Shown here piece by piece: positions 7,927-64,000 of a DNA stretch of 64,000 nucleotides. A program made the position numbers and the translations under genes. Numbering within the stretch: position 1 is the first letter of the stretch; the number at the start of each line of letters is the position of its first letter. The notes under the pieces were generated by a model that saw nothing but the letters and a program-made list of their open reading frames with translations, did not search any database and had not been told where the DNA came from. The DNA comes from Selaginella moellendorffii (taxonomy: Eukaryota > Plantae > Lycopodiophyta). The stretch is taken from the NCBI RefSeq assembly GCF_000143415.4, contig NW_003314269.1:2487544-2551543 (forward strand), read 5' to 3'.

Positions 7927-9729
7927 ATGGCCGATCGGGTCGTGAGGTCGTGGGTGTGCGGCGGTCTCATCGGCGCGGGGGCCTTCGGTAGCGTAAATTT
8001 GGCGGTGGACAACGAAACAGGGGATCTGTTCGCGGTGAAATCGACCGAGTGTAGCGGCGGGCGGTCCAGCGATGGCGCGCTGCTGGCGCTGGAGAACGAG
8101 TTGTCGATCCTCCAGAGCCTCCAATCCTCTCCCCGGATCGTCAAGTGCCTGGGATCGGCGTGGTCGAGTTCGGCGGAATCGGGGCAGCCGGTGCGCAGCG
8201 TCTTCCTCGAGTACATGCCCGGCGGCAGCATCGCCGATCTCATGGCCAAGCTGGGCGGCAAGCTCCACGAATCTCTGGCGAGGATCTACACCCGGGGGAT
8301 CCTCGAGGGCCTCGAGTTCCTCCACCGGCGCGGGATCGTGCACTGCGACATCAAGGGGAAGAACGTCCTCGTCGGCGCCACCGGCGTCAAGCTCGCGGAC
8401 TTCGGCGCCGCCAAGCGCCTGAGCGGCGCCGCCCACTACCAGCACCACCAGCAATCGCCCATGATCAAGGGGACGCCGCTGTGGATGGCGCCCGAGGTGG
8501 TCCGGCAGGAAGAACAGGGCACGGCCTCGGACATCTGGTCGCTGGGATGCACGGTTCTGGAGATGATCACCGGCCGCGCGCCCTGGGGCGATGTCAAGCA
8601 CACATTCTCGGCGCTCTACCGGATCGGGTGTAGCGAGGAGCTGCCCGAGCTGCCGTGGTGGCTGTCCGAGCAGGGCAAGGATTTCGTGATGAATTGCCTG
8701 AGGAGGGATCCCCGGGAGCGGTGGACGAGCGCCCAGCTCCTCCAGCACCCATTTGTGATGGAGGCCATGGAATCGCCATCGCCGTCGCTGATCGCGGCGC
8801 CGCGGCGAGCTAGCGCAGGGGATTTGGACAGCGTCCAGATTACCAAGCTCCTGGCGGATATGCCGGTGGTGGCGGAGGAGGAGGAGGAGAAAGGAGTCGC
8901 GGAGGCGGCGGAGAGGCGGCGATTGGTTCGTCCCAGATTGGAAGTTTGCGGCAACTGGGATGATCAGGGTCACGGGAGCGATCCGGGGATGAGCCCGAGC
9001 TCCGCGGGGGGCAAGTGGATCGTTGTGCGATCGCCGCAAGGGGGAAACAACTGGAATCTCCCGGACCCATTCAATCTCCTCTCGGATTTCGAGTCCGGGG
9101 AGGATGGCGAGGTTGTCGATGCCAGCAGCGATGATGATGAGCGCAAAGCGGTGGAAGTGGAGCTCGAGGTGGAAGATCAAGAGGAAGAGGAAGAAGAAGA
9201 AGAAGAAAAGGGTGTGAGGAGTTTGGAATCATCGCCGGTGGATCATGCCGAGGAAGAGGCCTCTTCTTCCTCGACTTCTTCGTCTTCTTGCGGTTTGGTT
9301 TTCTGTTACGAGTTTTGGGCGTGGACGAATCCACAACCGAAATTCTACCGCGCGAGTTTGCTCCAACAAGAAGGCCACCGGATTGGATTCCCCCCCGGCT
9401 CCTCCTCCTCCTCCAGATCCGATCGCCGCCCTTGGCAATGCGGGAAAGATCCGCCGCCCCGGCGAAGGAAGAAGAATCGATCCAGGAAGAAGAAGAAGAA
9501 GCGGAGGAGGCGACGAGGGAGGTGGATCATTGCTGCCGCTGACGGCGATGATGAGCTAGGATTGCCGGATTCATGCGTGGAGTGCAAGAGCCGGAAGCGT
9601 CTCGCATTGTTCTTGCTTCTGTTTGATTCCTCGTCAAGAAGATGGAGGAAGAAAAAGAAAAGTAAAAGAAAATCCTTGTCTTCCAACCGTAAAAACAGTA
9701 GTACTCTTTGGCCCTCCCCTGTTTTTTAG
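7927..9729 (+). CDS. MEKK-type MAP kinase kinase kinase, copy 2 (tandem paralogue)
   Basis: Complete kinase motifs, highly similar to copy 1 (VFLEYMPGGS..DLMAKLGGKL.ESL.RIYTRGIL.GLEFLH); shared KWIVVRSPQG...F..LSDF motif; first ATG at 7927 (the ORF track starts at an upstream TTG). Confidence 0.95.
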   Translation: MADRVVRSWVCGGLIGAGAFGSVNLAVDNETGDLFAVKSTECSGGRSSDGALLALENELSILQSLQSSPRIVKCLGSAWSSSAESGQPVRSVFLEYMPGGSIADLMAKLGGKLHESLARIYTRGILEGLEFLHRRGIVHCDIKGKNVLVGATGVKLADFGAAKRLSGAAHYQHHQQSPMIKGTPLWMAPEVVRQEEQGTASDIWSLGCTVLEMITGRAPWGDVKHTFSALYRIGCSEELPELPWWLSEQGKDFVMNCLRRDPRERWTSAQLLQHPFVMEAMESPSPSLIAAPRRASAGDLDSVQITKLLADMPVVAEEEEEKGVAEAAERRRLVRPRLEVCGNWDDQGHGSDPGMSPSSAGGKWIVVRSPQGGNNWNLPDPFNLLSDFESGEDGEVVDASSDDDERKAVEVELEVEDQEEEEEEEEEKGVRSLESSPVDHAEEEASSSSTSSSSCGLVFCYEFWAWTNPQPKFYRASLLQQEGHRIGFPPGSSSSSRSDRRPWQCGKDPPPRRRKKNRSRKKKKKRRRRRGRWIIAAADGDDELGLPDSCVECKSRKRLALFLLLFDSSSRRWRKKKKSKRKSLSSNRKNSSTLWPSPVF

Positions 9730-59191: not shown

Positions 59192-59331
59192 CTTTCCACC
59201 TGGCTAAATATTTCGTTTCGCGGCCTCCCTAGATTCGACCTCGCGACCGGGCTAGTTAGCTATTGTCCAGACGATAGAATACATTCTATACATCCAAATG
59301 AAGCATAAGCATATGACTGGTTCTTATTCTC

Positions 59332-61916
59332 TTAAATCCTCGTGGCTTCTTCCCCATCGAATTCGTCTCCTTCATCGCCTTCTTCTTCCTCCGGAGGGGG
59401 GCTTTCTTCTCGCTGCCTCGGCTTTTGCTGCCTGGGATTGAAAGGCATCCTCGGATCTACTCCGATCTTCTTCATCAATCGCTCCCTCACGGTCGTGTTG
59501 GCTTTGGTGTTTGAGGCTTTCTTCACCGGCGATGGCTTCGTTCCGTGCATTAGCTTCGACACCGAGGCCGACTTTACTTCCTGGAATTCGAGCTCTTGTG
59601 ATATCTAAACACGCGGGGGAAGAGTATTGAGACTTTTACCTTTCGTCCTCCTCGAGAGTATGGCTTTGGTTTCCGACGTGGTCGATCACTGTCTTCTGAG
59701 TACTCTGATTCATCGTCAAACTCTTCGTCAGTGTCGCTGCTGGTCGCATCTCCGTCCTTTTCCACGTCGAAATCCTCGTCGTCGTCCTTCCGGTTTTCAT
59801 CGTACAATACCTGCATTGGCACGAGAGGTGTGTGACTACCACATGTAGAAAGTATGAGCTTACCTCTCCTTCATCGTCCTCTTGCTCTTCCTCCACCTCT
59901 TCTTCCTCATTTTCGAGCTTTTCTGGCTTCACCTGAAACATATGCAAGAATTATAGTAGATTAAGTCGAATCCCTTCGCTTACGCTTGTCTCGCCTTCCG
60001 TCGGGCTCGTCAAACCCACATCCGGATTGCTTTTCTGCCACATACACATGTGAGCAACCATAAAAATGCCACTTTGTTTGTTACCTTCACTTTTAAGATG
60101 TTCTCGAGTTCTTTCAAAAGTTCAACCGGGTCAGAAATGTCGGGAGGCACCTCACCGCCATCCTTAGACTGAAGAAAACACGAGTCTTGTAAGAACGTAA
60201 GCATGAACACTACCCATCTTACCTGCAACCAAAACTTGAGACCTCTTACAAGTTTCGGAAGACCTTCCTTTTCCCAGCTAGTAACCTCTTCTTTGCCAGA
60301 GTCATCTTTTAGTAGCTGTAAATAGCGAGTTGCAGTATACCTATAATTTCAAACATGAGCTACACAAATCTGCCATGGAAGTATCACATACCACATTAGC
60401 TGCTTATAGAAGGGAAACCGAAACTTTTGGCGAACTTTGAGCCGCTCCTCCATCAGCCAAGTATTGTAAGGTCAAGGAAAAGAATCTGTCGCTGTCATCC
60501 AAAGAACAAGATAAAGGATATATGTCGAGCTGAAGCCCCAAATTGTAGCCTGTCAGGAAATTTCCACCAATAACTATCGAGTCGGCGTGAGTTACAACAC
60601 AATGCGGCCAGCCCCCAGGCCTGCAGCAAAAGAAACGTTAGATGGATGTGCAAACTAGCGAATAGAAGAACGGCTTACAGTAGGAGAGTGTCTCCAGTCG
60701 AGAGCTCGACTTTCTGGCCTCCGCTAGCTCGCTCTGCAAAGAACACGCTAGCCTGCAAGGCCGCTTCTCTCATAAAACAATGCTAACATCGAAAACTAAA
60801 TACCTGCCTGCCTATCTGAAGAAGACCATTCTTCGAAAAGCATGAGGTTTCCCTTTGTTGGAGGGATCATCAAAAATGTCTTTTTCCCACTGCAAAACAA
60901 GCGTTTACACAAACAGAAAAAAGGAGACAATACCAGCACCTACCTTATAACATGATACCACACCGAGGAGCCTCCAAAATCAAGATGAAAATCCATGAAA
61001 CAACCCTCAACGCTCATTATCGCATAGAGCTGGACCTATTTGTAGACTACGTTTGAGTAAAGCCATGCGTACAGTGACGAAGTCGCAAACCTCTGGAATG
61101 GTGGTACTCTGGTTACGAGGCCACGCCTTCTCCACAAGGTCCAGCTCTTTCACTAAGGAAGGCGCACTGACCTATACAGGAACATGCCGTGTTATCCTTC
61201 TGAAAAAATAATGACTTTTGAGCTCAAGGTGAGGGAATTTACGGCCTCACCATTTTCTGGAGCGGAGTGTTCGCCAGATCCAGTGACACAACGTTTAGTA
61301 AAGGCTTCTTTGGATTTGGCGACGAGAAATACGACACCCAATCCTCCATAGCATACACGGGACCTTCAGCCTGATTCCCAAAGAAGAAGTGAGAAGAACG
61401 ATAAGCAGAAAAAAAATACCTGTGTGGTAACATCTATAGTTTCGATCTGCCGGTCGAAGCCAACCAGCTTAGCCAAATCCTCGACAGTCAATTGTGTCTC
61501 CGGGAGCCTAGAACAACCAGGAATGCGAAAGAGATAAAAGAATTTAGCAAAAGTAAGCGAGAACAAAGAAAAAGAAAGCATCCATACCTTAGCCCAAGAG
61601 CAGAGGCACCATCGTCCACAGCTCTCACGACACACGGGTTCTTAAAGCCCGTGGAGTGCACATAGTGTGACAAATCCTTGGCCTCCACGACGGGCACGGC
61701 GGTGGCTGCGAGAGTCTGGCCCCCTCCGCCTCCGCCTCCTCCTCCGCCTCCCTGGCTGCCGATCTCGGCCTCGCCTTGAGAAGCATCGTCCCACTTGGCC
61801 ACCGCCCGCGACAGCTTCCTGTACTGAACCCTGGTGCAATCGTCGAAGCCCGTCTCGTCCAGGCGCGCGTAATCCACCGCCACTCTCTGCCGCTTGGAGC
61901 GCCTCACCTGTGCCAT
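59332..61916 (-). CDS. JmjC-domain histone demethylase, KDM2/KDM7 (JHDM1/PHF8/Jhd1)-type, multi-exon
   Basis: Spliced sequence reads IETIDVTTQ...WVSYF...LLNVVSLDL...[49 protein letters not shown]...[25 protein letters not shown]...[28 protein letters not shown]. The HxD...H triad is present. Confidence 0.92.
60461..60521 (-). other. U12-type (minor spliceosome) AT-AC intron
   Basis: 5' site ATATCCTTT, branch site TTCCTTGAC about 11 nt before the terminal AC. Removing these 61 bp restores the conserved JmjC frame. Confidence 0.92.
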
Positions 61917-64000
61917 GGTTTCTCCCCCTCCCTCGCGAAATTCAGTCACATTCTTCGCGCCCAGGCGCTGCCGCCTAGCTCGCGCCCACCAAGATTAGCT
62001 CGCCCGTGAGCTTTAGGTCAAGATAGAATATTCTACCTTCGCAACGGGAATATTATTTTCTTGCCCTCTGTTCTTTTGCGATGCAACGAAGAAGCTAAGC
62101 GCCACGAGCAGCCAGGGTAGCCAAGTCTTTGCGTGTGAGGAATATGGACTTTCTTCGATTTTCATTTTTCCCTGTTCATTCAGTCTGCTTTTTACAAGCA
62201 TTGTGTAGTGGATTTGCAGCAGCCAGTTTGTCCAAATGAAGAAGATCTCGCAATGCAACCTCCACGCTGATGGATCAATTTGCATTGGTATCCTGCAACA
62301 ATTCTTGGCCACAAAGTCAGTCTTCACATCTTGCTCCTGGCTTTGCAGGTGAGAAACTTTGTGAAACTTTTAGCTTCCCACGTCAAACTTGACTATTTTG
62401 ATTTCACTACAAAGGTGATCCATTCTAGTGTTAGGCACCAAGTTAAGATGATAAGATAACAAAATGTAGCTCCATTCTAGTAGGGCAAGAATAATATTTA
62501 ACATGTGGTGGCAAATCCTAAAGGACCTTCTAAAGGGAGACTTATGACAAAAACCATGGTGATCAGAGGGTGGGTTATATATGATCATAGATGATCATTC
62601 CTGAATTTGGGAGGGCACTTGTATGCAAACCATGAGAGACTACAGCATAGATTAGCAACGAAAATAAAAACTAGGAAACTTTAAAAGTAAGACACTAAGT
62701 CTCATTCCCTTTAGAACATTGGAACTCTTTATTTCCCTATGCTATAATCTCTTATATGGTTTGAGTACAAGTACCCTCCCAATGGTCGTGGGCTTATGTA
62801 CTTGTGGAGTAGTGAGTCAATAACTTGCTCTTGAAAATCTAGAAGTTGTGAGAGTTGGAGATGCAAGAATGCTTGGCCTTTGCATTAGTTGGCTCTCACA
62901 AAGAAAATCTTACTCATGAGCAGCAAACTGGGTAAAATAGAAAAGATTCACATACTAGGTTCCAATTGCCTTAAGCACGCTTGAAAAAGGCAAGAGCAAA
63001 GCTAAATTATCTCACTCTAGAGAAGGGAGAGGAGTAAGGTTGTTAATTGTCACTAGAAGGGCTCATGGTAGGAAGTGCAGTAGTAGGCACAGATGTGGCA
63101 AGAGGAGTATGACATGTCAACAGCTGTAAAGAGGAAGGAGTGGATATATAGGTGACCTAAGCATCTTGGGCAGATGGAATGACATGTAAAGAAGGCAATG
63201 TTTGAAATTGGATCTTTGTAGGCTCAACCAAGTGACAGGATTCAGGTAGTGCATTAAAAATGATAATTTGGAAACACCTAAGTTTTTAGAAGTGAGACAC
63301 CAAGTCTCACTCACTAACACTAAATAACAACCTTGATCAAATGAGCAGAATAGAATGATACATTGCAATTTTAATTTCAAACGATAGGTTAAAGTTGAAG
63401 AAATCAATACATTCTTGCTTGAGCCAGTCCACCACTGTAGCATAAAGACTATCTAAAGGATTTGGAAAGGGAAAAGATGAATAAAAAGGTAGAGAGATAA
63501 AAGTGATGAAAGTTAAGGTGGAACAAAAGTGAGAGGAATAAAAGATATAAGAATATAAGATAATCAGGAAAAACTTCAAATTCATACTTGGCATAATTGT
63601 GTTACAATTGATTTATATTAAGTATGAAGTCAAAAATTTAACTTGACACCACCTATAATGATTGGAGCTCAACCTTGAGATCACCTATATATACATCTAA
63701 ATCCACCTCATTTTGTGCATATATATATGTACACAATCATTGTCATAAAGAATGAAGATTAGCTCTATTGCATGACATAAATGTAAATAACAATCTATTA
63801 TAACAAATTGAGCAATAGAAAATAAATTAAAACCTATATCAACTAATACAAAAAAGATAACAAGGGACTTTTTGTTATAAAACTAAACTTGAAACATAAA
63901 CATTGGATGAATTAGTGTTAAATGAATATTTTTATAGTATTCTTGAAAAAAGGATGGAAGGGTCACTAATTTATTCATGCAAGGTCTCTCTATTATTTAC

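Follow-up and report, generated by a model that had tools for sequence, protein, structure and literature searches.

A KDM2/KDM7-type JmjC gene in Selaginella moellendorffii: gene structure, active site and distribution among land plants

The window analysed here, a 64,000-nucleotide stretch of the genome of the lycophyte Selaginella moellendorffii (contig NW_003314269.1, positions 2,487,544 to 2,551,543, forward strand), carries on its minus strand, at window positions 59332-61916, a gene for a JmjC protein of the KDM2/KDM7 (JHDM1) type. By sequence, fold and phylogeny, the protein belongs to KDM2/KDM7 in the broad sense, and orthologues are found in bryophytes, lycophytes and ferns.

Gene structure and transcripts

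The gene consists of 15 exons and 14 introns, and its coding exons sum to 1776 nt, or 591 codons, from an ATG at 61916 to a TAA at 59334-59332. This coding region is supported by the exon model, by RNA junctions and by comparison with the RefSeq S. moellendorffii protein named ‘jmjC domain-containing histone demethylation protein 1’ (P0158, 591 residues), onto which the 15 exon translations map in order and gap-free, with 579 of 586 residues identical and 7 different. The five split codons coincide exactly with the positions left uncompared, and P0158 was used as a stand-in for the window protein in all whole-protein analyses (Pfam, PDB, tree and fold).

Exon 1 (61588-61916), defined by the exon model and alignment, encodes a 16-residue basic motif near the N-terminus (61857-61904) and, in the variable region past it, a Selaginella-specific run of 13 glycine codons (61714-61756) that is found in no orthologue. 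Exons 2 (61420-61507), 3 (61251-61370) and 7 (60679-60752) are placed by the exon model, RNA joints and the match to P0158, and exon 4 (61091-61171) by the exon model and RNA contigs. Active-site residues are encoded by three further exons: exon 5, part of the JmjC core (60944-61035), with M220 (60994-60996), H223 (60985-60987), D225 (60979-60981) and Y233 (60955-60957), and exon 8 (60522-60620), with the third iron ligand H295 (60602-60604) and the pocket residue N309 (60560-60562), both assigned by PDB match and alignment, and exon 6 (60808-60889; exon model and alignment), with the 2-oxoglutarate (2OG)-binding lysine K240 (60880-60882). The JHD domain starts in exon 9 (60392-60460), which also encodes the flap residues K334 and F335 together with E326 and R336 (weak JHD match of the exon alone, Pfam and alignment), continues through exon 10 (60223-60340; exon model, RNA joints and Pfam) and ends in exon 11 (60085-60168; exon model, Pfam and AlphaFold2 (AF2) model), where the last well-folded helix, residues 398-416, is encoded. 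According to the exon and AF2 models, exon 12 (59984-60034) encodes a disordered linker, and exons 13 (59864-59932) and 14 (59640-59810) encode acidic, disordered segments. Exon 15 (59332-59580; exon model and alignment) contains a conserved 20-residue C-terminal motif (59440-59499), followed by the acidic end and the stop codon.

The introns are short (49-80 nt) and 12 of the 14 are of the GT-AG type. Intron 6 (60753-60807, 55 nt), whose RNA joint was seen in four runs, allows seven slides of that joint, among which only GC..AG pairs a 3' AG with a 5' GC or GT; it is assigned as GC-AG because this is the sole solution that retains the family-conserved ASVFFAERA. A GT donor at 60803 would bring in an in-frame stop or the loss of the conserved SVFFA and is ruled out by the RNA joint. 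Intron 8 (60461-60521, 61 nt) has no in-frame solution as a GT-AG intron. Its donor reads ATATCCTTT, a branch-like TTCCTTGAC ends 11 nt before the 3' AC, and the RNA joint 60460/60522 is exact in four runs, with no slide possible. U12-type introns of this class are characterised by AT..AC termini, a /ATATCCTT donor and a branch site resembling TCCTTRAC that lies 10-20 nt upstream of the 3' end, and intron 8, judged from its sequence, bears the marks of such a U12-type AT-AC intron. The moss Ceratodon has an AT-AC intron at the identical codon (..LD I|W..), about 240 nt long (L005, about 8387-8626) and with the donor ATATCCTCC, so that the boundary between JmjC and JHD is divided by an AT-AC intron in both plants. 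As it is common to Selaginella and Ceratodon, this putative minor-spliceosome intron would be at least as old as the land plants.

The spikemoss gene is expressed. A sequencing-run index returned the stretch for 20 runs, which come from 8 studies and, in 19 cases, share a single organism label; these runs, whose labelling as RNA is the tool's guess, hold about half of the stretch's 31-mers, as expected of spliced RNA. When contigs from four runs, each from a different study, were placed on 59200-62000 to check the junctions, all 14 were recovered, 13 of them in every run, and a single 2890-nt contig spans the entire coding sequence. The intron-3 joint is missing from run X2, which has instead an alternative acceptor at 61200, 29 nt upstream of exon 4 (61199-61251); its use would shift the frame, and it is a minor isoform or splicing noise. 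The window differs from the RNA contigs by single bases at 59256, 59895, 60586, 60847 and 61000, and these differences, like the seven residues that differ from RefSeq, probably reflect two haplotypes or strains of S. moellendorffii.

A glyoxalase-family gene (PF00903; 58458-59191, minus strand), which by eye resembles plant glyoxalase I, begins about 140 nt past the demethylase stop codon (gap 59192-59331). RNA contigs of two runs extend from the 3' end of the demethylase gene past 59200 toward it and that of a third ends at 59237, which may indicate overlapping untranslated regions or read-through. The Ceratodon gene likewise has a glyoxalase gene as its neighbour, about 5.7 kb upstream and on the opposite strand.

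Family, domain architecture and active site

The initial annotation had read the JmjC core as following the motifs of KDM2A, PHF8 and Jhd1, and every motif it quoted lies in the minus-strand exons: in exons 1, 5 and 6, with PGGWPHCV and GGNFL in exon 8 and KFRFPFY..LMWY in exons 9 and 10. Its assignment of the protein to the KDM2/KDM7 type also holds. Against PDB sequences, P0158 matched KDM7A (E 1e-71), KDM2A (2.5e-71), PHF8 (5e-64), PHF2 (1.5e-52) and ceKDM7A (5.5e-38), and the next JmjC protein, JMJD6, followed at E 0.077, a gap of about 70 orders of magnitude. Single exons gave the same picture: exon 5 alone matched only KDM2A (E 7e-11), PHF8, KDM7A, ceKDM7A and PHF2, and exon 8 alone only KDM2A, PHF8, KDM7A and ceKDM7A. 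Pfam found JHD (PF17811), Cupin_8 and JmjC in P0158, all above their cut-offs, and no other domain. The JHD, which went with KDM2/7-family proteins in the Pfam scans made here, covers residues 315-407 directly after JmjC (E 4.8e-10, 40.2 bits against a cut-off of 23.4). Single exons are too short for Pfam, which was nearly blind on them and returned only a weak JHD match for exon 9 (E 0.04).

The fold agrees with the sequence. An AF2 model built from an alignment of 141 sequences, which replaced a model from 15 sequences with a predicted local distance difference test score (pLDDT) of 50, has a pLDDT above 90 across most of residues 71-420, including the helices at 316-416; a short N-terminal helix is also confident, and the C-terminal 170 residues are disordered save for a short helix at 540-547. 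When the model was compared with Foldseek, the top 30 matches consisted entirely of KDM7A, PHF8, KDM2A, PHF2 and ceKDM7A. The target-normalised TM-score (TMt) was 0.71-0.88 for human KDM2/7 structures and 0.59-0.63 for ceKDM7A, with JMJD6 coming next at about 0.5; the root-mean-square deviation (rmsd) was 2.0-2.4 Å for most chains of KDM7A, PHF8 and PHF2 but 3.6-6.6 Å for KDM2A. Membership of a plant-wide JmjC clade (JMJD6, JmjC-only, KDM3, KDM4 or KDM5), with a resemblance to KDM2/7 confined to motifs and with orthologues in angiosperms, would fit a 2022 survey in which all plant JmjC genes, including all 12 from S. moellendorffii, are put in five plant subfamilies and KDM2/7 goes unmentioned (PMC9029850). 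It is, however, very improbable in view of the E-value gap, the JHD above its cut-off, the difference in TMt between human KDM2/7 and JMJD6 and the lack of any angiosperm match when the protein collection was searched with three queries. The tree described below places the protein inside the KDM2/7 family, and it does not group with JMJD6, KDM5 or any plant-wide clade. Membership of JMJD6 or the JmjC-only group in particular is contradicted by score gap, JHD, fold and distribution.

Pfam detected no PHD, CXXC, F-box or LRR in P0158, in line with the earlier statement that the first three are missing, and no CXXC, PHD_4, F-box or LRR in any plant orthologue, whereas all four were found in animal KDM2 representatives. 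The short basic N-terminus and acidic tail described in the initial annotation are both present, but the former is a conserved family motif rather than a novelty and the latter contains a conserved motif that had gone unnoticed. The N-terminal motif has the pattern R[RK]SxR...(V/I)(D/N)Y..L and lies just after the PHD finger in fungal relatives; a similar segment is found at the start of animal KDM2, and the Selaginella protein begins four residues ahead of the motif that trails the PHD finger in fungi. The plant C-terminal motif, with an 11-residue core at residues 539-549, comprises 13 residues followed by (V/L)DPR. Its (S/T)(A/V)(K/R)xRLxK pattern recurs at the C-termini of animal KDM7, PHF8 and PHF2 (KKGxATAKQRLGKILK) and in nematode relatives, Mesostigma and environmental algal proteins, but not in KDM2. 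In addition, the loop between WP and VQxY has 11-12 residues in plants, 12-14 in fungi and 12-16 in KDM7/PHF, compared with 24 in all five animal KDM2 proteins examined, where the long loop carries N186 of the Gly33-Gly34 channel (PMC4197961). The short loop and the KDM7-type C-terminal motif therefore suggest that the plant protein resembles an ancestral KDM7-like frame minus its PHD finger.

Two departures from this architecture were seen among the green relatives. The orthologues of leptosporangiate ferns (P0033, P0157, P0160, P0161 and P0325) stop at about 400 residues, just past the JHD, and are without the acidic region and the C-terminal motif; they have a threonine at the 2OG site. In the chlorophytes, a GYF domain is matched at the C-terminus of a Coccomyxa protein (P0226, residues 864-903, above the Pfam cut-off) and, weakly and below the cut-off, of a [Myrmecia] bisecta protein (P0168, residues 552-587). 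This GYF domain may stand in place of the PHD finger of the fungal and animal relatives.

The active site can be read against KDM2A, for which residue roles have been described (PMC4197961, PMC11168414). The iron ligands H223, D225 and H295 correspond to KDM2A H212, D214 and H284 and are invariant or at least 90% conserved in the 141-sequence alignment, and the 2OG contacts K240 and Y233 correspond to K229 and Y222. In the methyl-lysine pocket, Y210, F226, N309, V167 and I212 take the places of KDM2A Y199, F215, N298, I144 and L201; I144 is replaced by valine in all plants and L201 by isoleucine only in two lycophytes. In KDM2A, N298 forms the pocket floor and hydrogen-bonds the dimethylammonium group, and Y199 and F215 form walls (PMC4197961), whereas E315 and R325 belong to the second sphere and K323 and F324 to the flap (PMC4197961, PMC11168414). 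Every land-plant orthologue sampled keeps the residues equivalent to KDM2A H212, D214, H284, K229, Y222, Y199, F215, N298, E315, R325, K323 and F324.

The exception is a methionine in place of the threonine three residues ahead of the first histidine. This substitution had been noted earlier and is borne out by the codon (ATG at 60996-60994) and the alignment: M220 occupies the position of KDM2A T209, which together with K229 hydrogen-bonds the C5 carboxylate of 2OG (PMC11168414). Threonine, lysine and tyrosine as contacts of this carboxylate are usual in the family without defining it. Methionine is found at this position in Selaginella, Diphasiastrum, Ceratodon, Physcomitrium, Sphagnum, Marchantia, Calypogeia, Psilotum and two early-fern-like sequences, the latter placed by the tree and by cluster members. 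Leptosporangiate ferns have threonine, as do all the algae, fungi and animals sampled. The two codons, ATG and ACG, are one transition apart, and on the gene tree the most parsimonious history would be a single change from threonine to methionine at the base of the land plants and one reversal in ferns. In the 2022 survey of plant JmjC genes, the 2OG residue is given as ‘F/T’, and active demethylase subfamilies carry phenylalanine there (PMC9029850). Since the rest of the active site is held throughout land plants and other active subfamilies have phenylalanine, the methionine would appear to be a tolerated change, possibly one that alters kinetics, rather than an inactivating one.

Alternatively, the protein could be a catalytically dead or impaired scaffold that keeps the KDM2/7 fold and, with methionine in its 2OG pocket, works as a reader or adaptor, as proposed for Epe1 and unmodified PHF2. 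In favour of such a role, M220 replaces a residue that is at least 90% conserved among the 141 family members and contacts 2OG in KDM2A (PMC11168414), and there is no reader domain to explain targeting. We nevertheless regard it as unlikely, because relaxed catalytic constraint would not be expected to leave both histidines, the aspartate, the 2OG lysine and tyrosine, the pocket asparagine and the second-sphere glutamate and arginine invariant in the land-plant orthologues sampled. Moreover, phenylalanine at the same position in active subfamilies shows a hydrophobic side chain to be compatible with catalysis (PMC9029850), and the return to threonine in leptosporangiate ferns suggests that both states work. 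We therefore keep to the reading of a catalytic protein; judged from these residues, the Selaginella protein is probably an active histone demethylase.

Distribution and descent in the green lineage

A collection of 5.8 billion predicted proteins was searched with the Psilotum orthologue, a profile of 15 land-plant orthologues and the Pteridium orthologue, followed by cluster look-ups. Orthologues were recovered from lycophytes (Selaginella and Diphasiastrum), mosses (Physcomitrium, Ceratodon with two copies, and four Sphagnum species), liverworts (Marchantia polymorpha, where the protein is MpCupin43, M. paleacea, Riccia and Calypogeia) and ferns (Psilotum, Pteridium, Ceratopteris and Adiantum with two loci), and proteins of green algae, fungi and animals follow at lower scores. 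Gymnosperm and angiosperm proteins were absent from the matches of the three queries in this collection. As the same searches did return fungal and animal KDM2/7 proteins at 35-45% identity, the lack of a seed-plant match supports a loss, most likely on the seed-plant stem or at an early stage of seed-plant evolution, within the limits set by the few gymnosperms in the collection. The initial annotation had proposed a chromatin eraser kept in seed-free plants and lost in angiosperms; its first half is upheld by the orthologues in bryophytes, lycophytes and ferns, and its second agrees with the absence of angiosperm matches from the protein collections. A link between the seed-free distribution and flagellated sperm was considered and dropped, the family being present also in Mucoromycota and Coccomyxa, which we take to be without flagella.

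A maximum-likelihood tree of 60 proteins (480 columns, LG+C20+F+G4; support given as ultrafast bootstrap/SH-aLRT) was confined to this family, with no other JmjC family in it, and is unrooted; animal KDM2 tips were labelled from their CXXC-PHD-F-box-LRR architecture. It recovers land plants (100/99) within Viridiplantae (100/100; land plants, Mesostigma, chlorophytes and environmental sequences), fungi (100/96), animal KDM2 (100/99), animal KDM7/PHF8/PHF2 (100/100), KDM2 and KDM7 together (95/90) and a split that sets fungi and Viridiplantae apart from the rest (98/91). Within the land plants, the branching of lycophytes, bryophytes (liverworts and mosses) and then ferns agrees with the species tree, and among ferns Psilotum branches first and the leptosporangiate ferns last. 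The Selaginella protein is outside both the animal KDM2 and the animal KDM7/PHF clades and is therefore a co-orthologue that predates the KDM2/KDM7 split: it is the green-lineage branch of the KDM2/KDM7 ancestor and, strictly, neither a KDM2 nor a KDM7. Read with the species tree, the gene tree shows vertical inheritance in the green lineage, and the short Selaginella-type introns and the U12 intron shared with moss fit a native plant gene.

Contamination, or a gene recently taken up from a fungus or alga by horizontal transfer, could account for Mucoromycota and chytrid proteins being the best-scoring relatives outside plants and for introns as short as fungal ones. The chance of this is almost negligible: the land-plant clade follows the plant phylogeny and is nested in a green-algal grade, the AT-AC intron has a counterpart at the same codon in a moss, the glyoxalase-family neighbour (of plant type, as judged by eye) is 140 nt away, the gene is expressed in runs from 8 studies with the same organism label, and RefSeq has it on a 6.9-Mb Selaginella scaffold. 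Tree, shared intron, neighbour gene, expression and scaffold thus all contradict contamination or fungal transfer.

We hold with considerable, though not full, confidence that the window encodes the Selaginella orthologue of a single ancestral eukaryotic KDM2/KDM7 gene, vertically inherited and kept in bryophytes, lycophytes and ferns, with a predicted activity and substrate. Several points weigh against this. Its status as a co-orthologue from before the duplication assumes that the root of the unrooted tree is not within the plant and fungal side. For seed plants, the absence was read from word-seeded searches of predicted proteins and not from genome-level tblastn, in a collection where gymnosperms, hornworts and most streptophyte algae are thinly represented. 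The demethylase activity of the plant members is a prediction only, and the Selaginella protein has methionine at a 2OG-site position that is otherwise so strongly conserved in the family. PHF2 and other family members whose active site has changed presumably have little or conditional activity, and the activity of the plant protein may likewise be reduced or lost.

In the literature, KDM2 is reportedly missing from plants, as the abstract of Qian et al. 2015 is said to state. The KDM2 group of Zhou and Ma 2008 has no plant member, their JmjC sampling having taken in moss, and the text of Grau-Bove et al. 2022 does not name KDM2. No account of a plant KDM2/7 protein turned up in our full-text literature searches. 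Identifying the protein is not in itself new, since RefSeq already gives the Selaginella and Physcomitrium proteins the automatic name ‘jmjC domain-containing histone demethylation protein 1’; what is new is that the family is absent from the comparative literature on plant JmjC proteins that we reached. The present analysis thus corrects published claims on the distribution of KDM2 in plants and is a finding about a family's distribution, not about a new kind of system. The gene shows that the green lineage inherited the KDM2/7 ancestor; the genetically tractable plants Marchantia (MpCupin43) and Physcomitrium retain it, and seed plants apparently do not.

Proposed mode of action and comparison with known systems

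The predicted protein would consist of a basic/acidic N-terminal motif, a core at about residues 70-420 formed by the JmjC double-stranded beta-helix and the JHD, an acidic disordered region and a C-terminal helix motif, with neither a reader nor a DNA-binding domain. In the proposed model, H223, D225 and H295 serve as the Fe(II) ligands, K240 and Y233 anchor the C5 carboxylate of 2OG, and a mono- or di-methylated lysine enters a pocket with V167, Y210, I212 and F226 as its walls and D225 and N309 as its floor, a geometry that limits KDM2A and PHF8 to me1 and me2 substrates. The methyl group would then be hydroxylated and released as formaldehyde. M220 is expected to shift cofactor affinity or oxygen access but not to abolish catalysis. 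As there is no PHD or CXXC domain, recruitment would have to come from partner proteins or the conserved terminal motifs.

As for the target, H3K36me2/1 is our leading candidate, at somewhat less than an even chance; H3K9me2, H3K27me2 or H4K20me1 are plausible at a lower level, and another substrate or no catalysis is an unlikely though still appreciable outcome. A separate possibility is that the protein is an active Fe/2OG oxygenase with a non-histone substrate, or one that hydroxylates instead of demethylating. In its favour are the lack of a chromatin reader domain in the plant protein, a crystal structure of PHF2 with a non-histone (VRK1) peptide (PDB 8f8y) and the reassignment of several JmjC enzymes to non-histone substrates (for example PMC3798130). 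However, the KDM2A contacts to methyl-lysine and to the H3 backbone at the flap (Y199, F215, N298 and K323/F324) are all kept and every characterised family member acts on histone lysines, which makes this improbable. A histone demethylase with the me1/me2 pocket described above is the reading we prefer.

A bolder extension of it, which we consider quite unlikely, is that the change from threonine to methionine arose in the first land plants and retuned the enzyme (for example through a lower affinity for 2OG or O2, which would make it a sensor of metabolic state or oxygen, or through use of another 2-oxoacid), and that this PHD-less enzyme is the main H3K36me2 or H3K9me2 eraser of seed-free plants. 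If so, the methionine would have persisted in bryophytes, lycophytes and early ferns for over 400 million years, the role of the enzyme would be weightiest in Selaginella, which is reported to be without the KDM3/IBM1 group (PMC9029850), and seed plants would have passed the job to other JMJ proteins on losing the gene. The protein offers a missing candidate for the erasure of H3K36me2 or H3K9me2 in seed-free plants, its methionine/threonine difference is a natural experiment on a cofactor-binding residue, and a PHD-less form of the ancestral enzyme is useful for asking how such enzymes get targeted.

In angiosperms, methylation at H3K4, K9, K27 and K36 is jointly erased by the JMJ proteins known from Arabidopsis. 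These (KDM3, KDM4, KDM5, JMJD6 and JmjC-only) share the JmjC fold and the Fe/2OG chemistry with the plant KDM2/7 protein but belong to other subfamilies and, in contrast to it, are without a JHD domain; none of them matched the land-plant KDM2/7 profile in the collection of 5.8 billion proteins, and no solved Arabidopsis JMJ structure is among the PDB matches listed for P0158. The fungal Jhd1/JHDM1 proteins (Mucoromycota, chytrids and Saccharomycotina) are the nearest non-green clade in the unrooted tree (98/91) and share with the plant protein the short loop, the core and the R[RK]SxR...(D/N)Y motif upstream of JmjC. Many of them, however, bear a PHD finger (PF00628) before the N-terminal motif, and all have threonine rather than methionine at the 2OG site.

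Among the animal proteins, KDM2A (with KDM2B the JHDM1A/B or FBXL11/10 pair) equals KDM7A in its sequence score, and its catalytic and pocket residues, apart from T209, are kept in the plant protein, including the K323/F324 flap, E315 and R325; both KDM2A and KDM2B have a basic N-terminal segment of similar pattern. KDM2 differs in its CXXC, PHD_4, F-box and LRR domains, none of which the plant protein has, in its 24-residue N186 loop, against 11-12 residues in the plant protein, and in a poorer fit of the fold (rmsd 3.6-6.6 Å). The best matches in both sequence and fold are KDM7A (KIAA1718/JHDM1D) and PHF8 (KDM7B), with TMt up to 0.88. These have an N-terminal PHD finger, a reader of H3K4me3, which steers the substrate choice of KDM7 according to Horton 2010 as relayed in PMC4197961 and which the plant protein does not have. 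They also differ from it in carrying threonine and not methionine at the 2OG site, and the flap reads Leu-Phe-Lys in fish KDM7 proteins where the plant protein has Lys-Phe-Arg, as in KDM2A. What the plant protein has in common with KDM7A and PHF8 is the JmjC and JHD core, with identical iron-binding, 2OG lysine and tyrosine and me1/me2 pocket residues, together with the short WP..VQ loop and the C-terminal (S/T)(A/V)(K/R)xRLxK motif.

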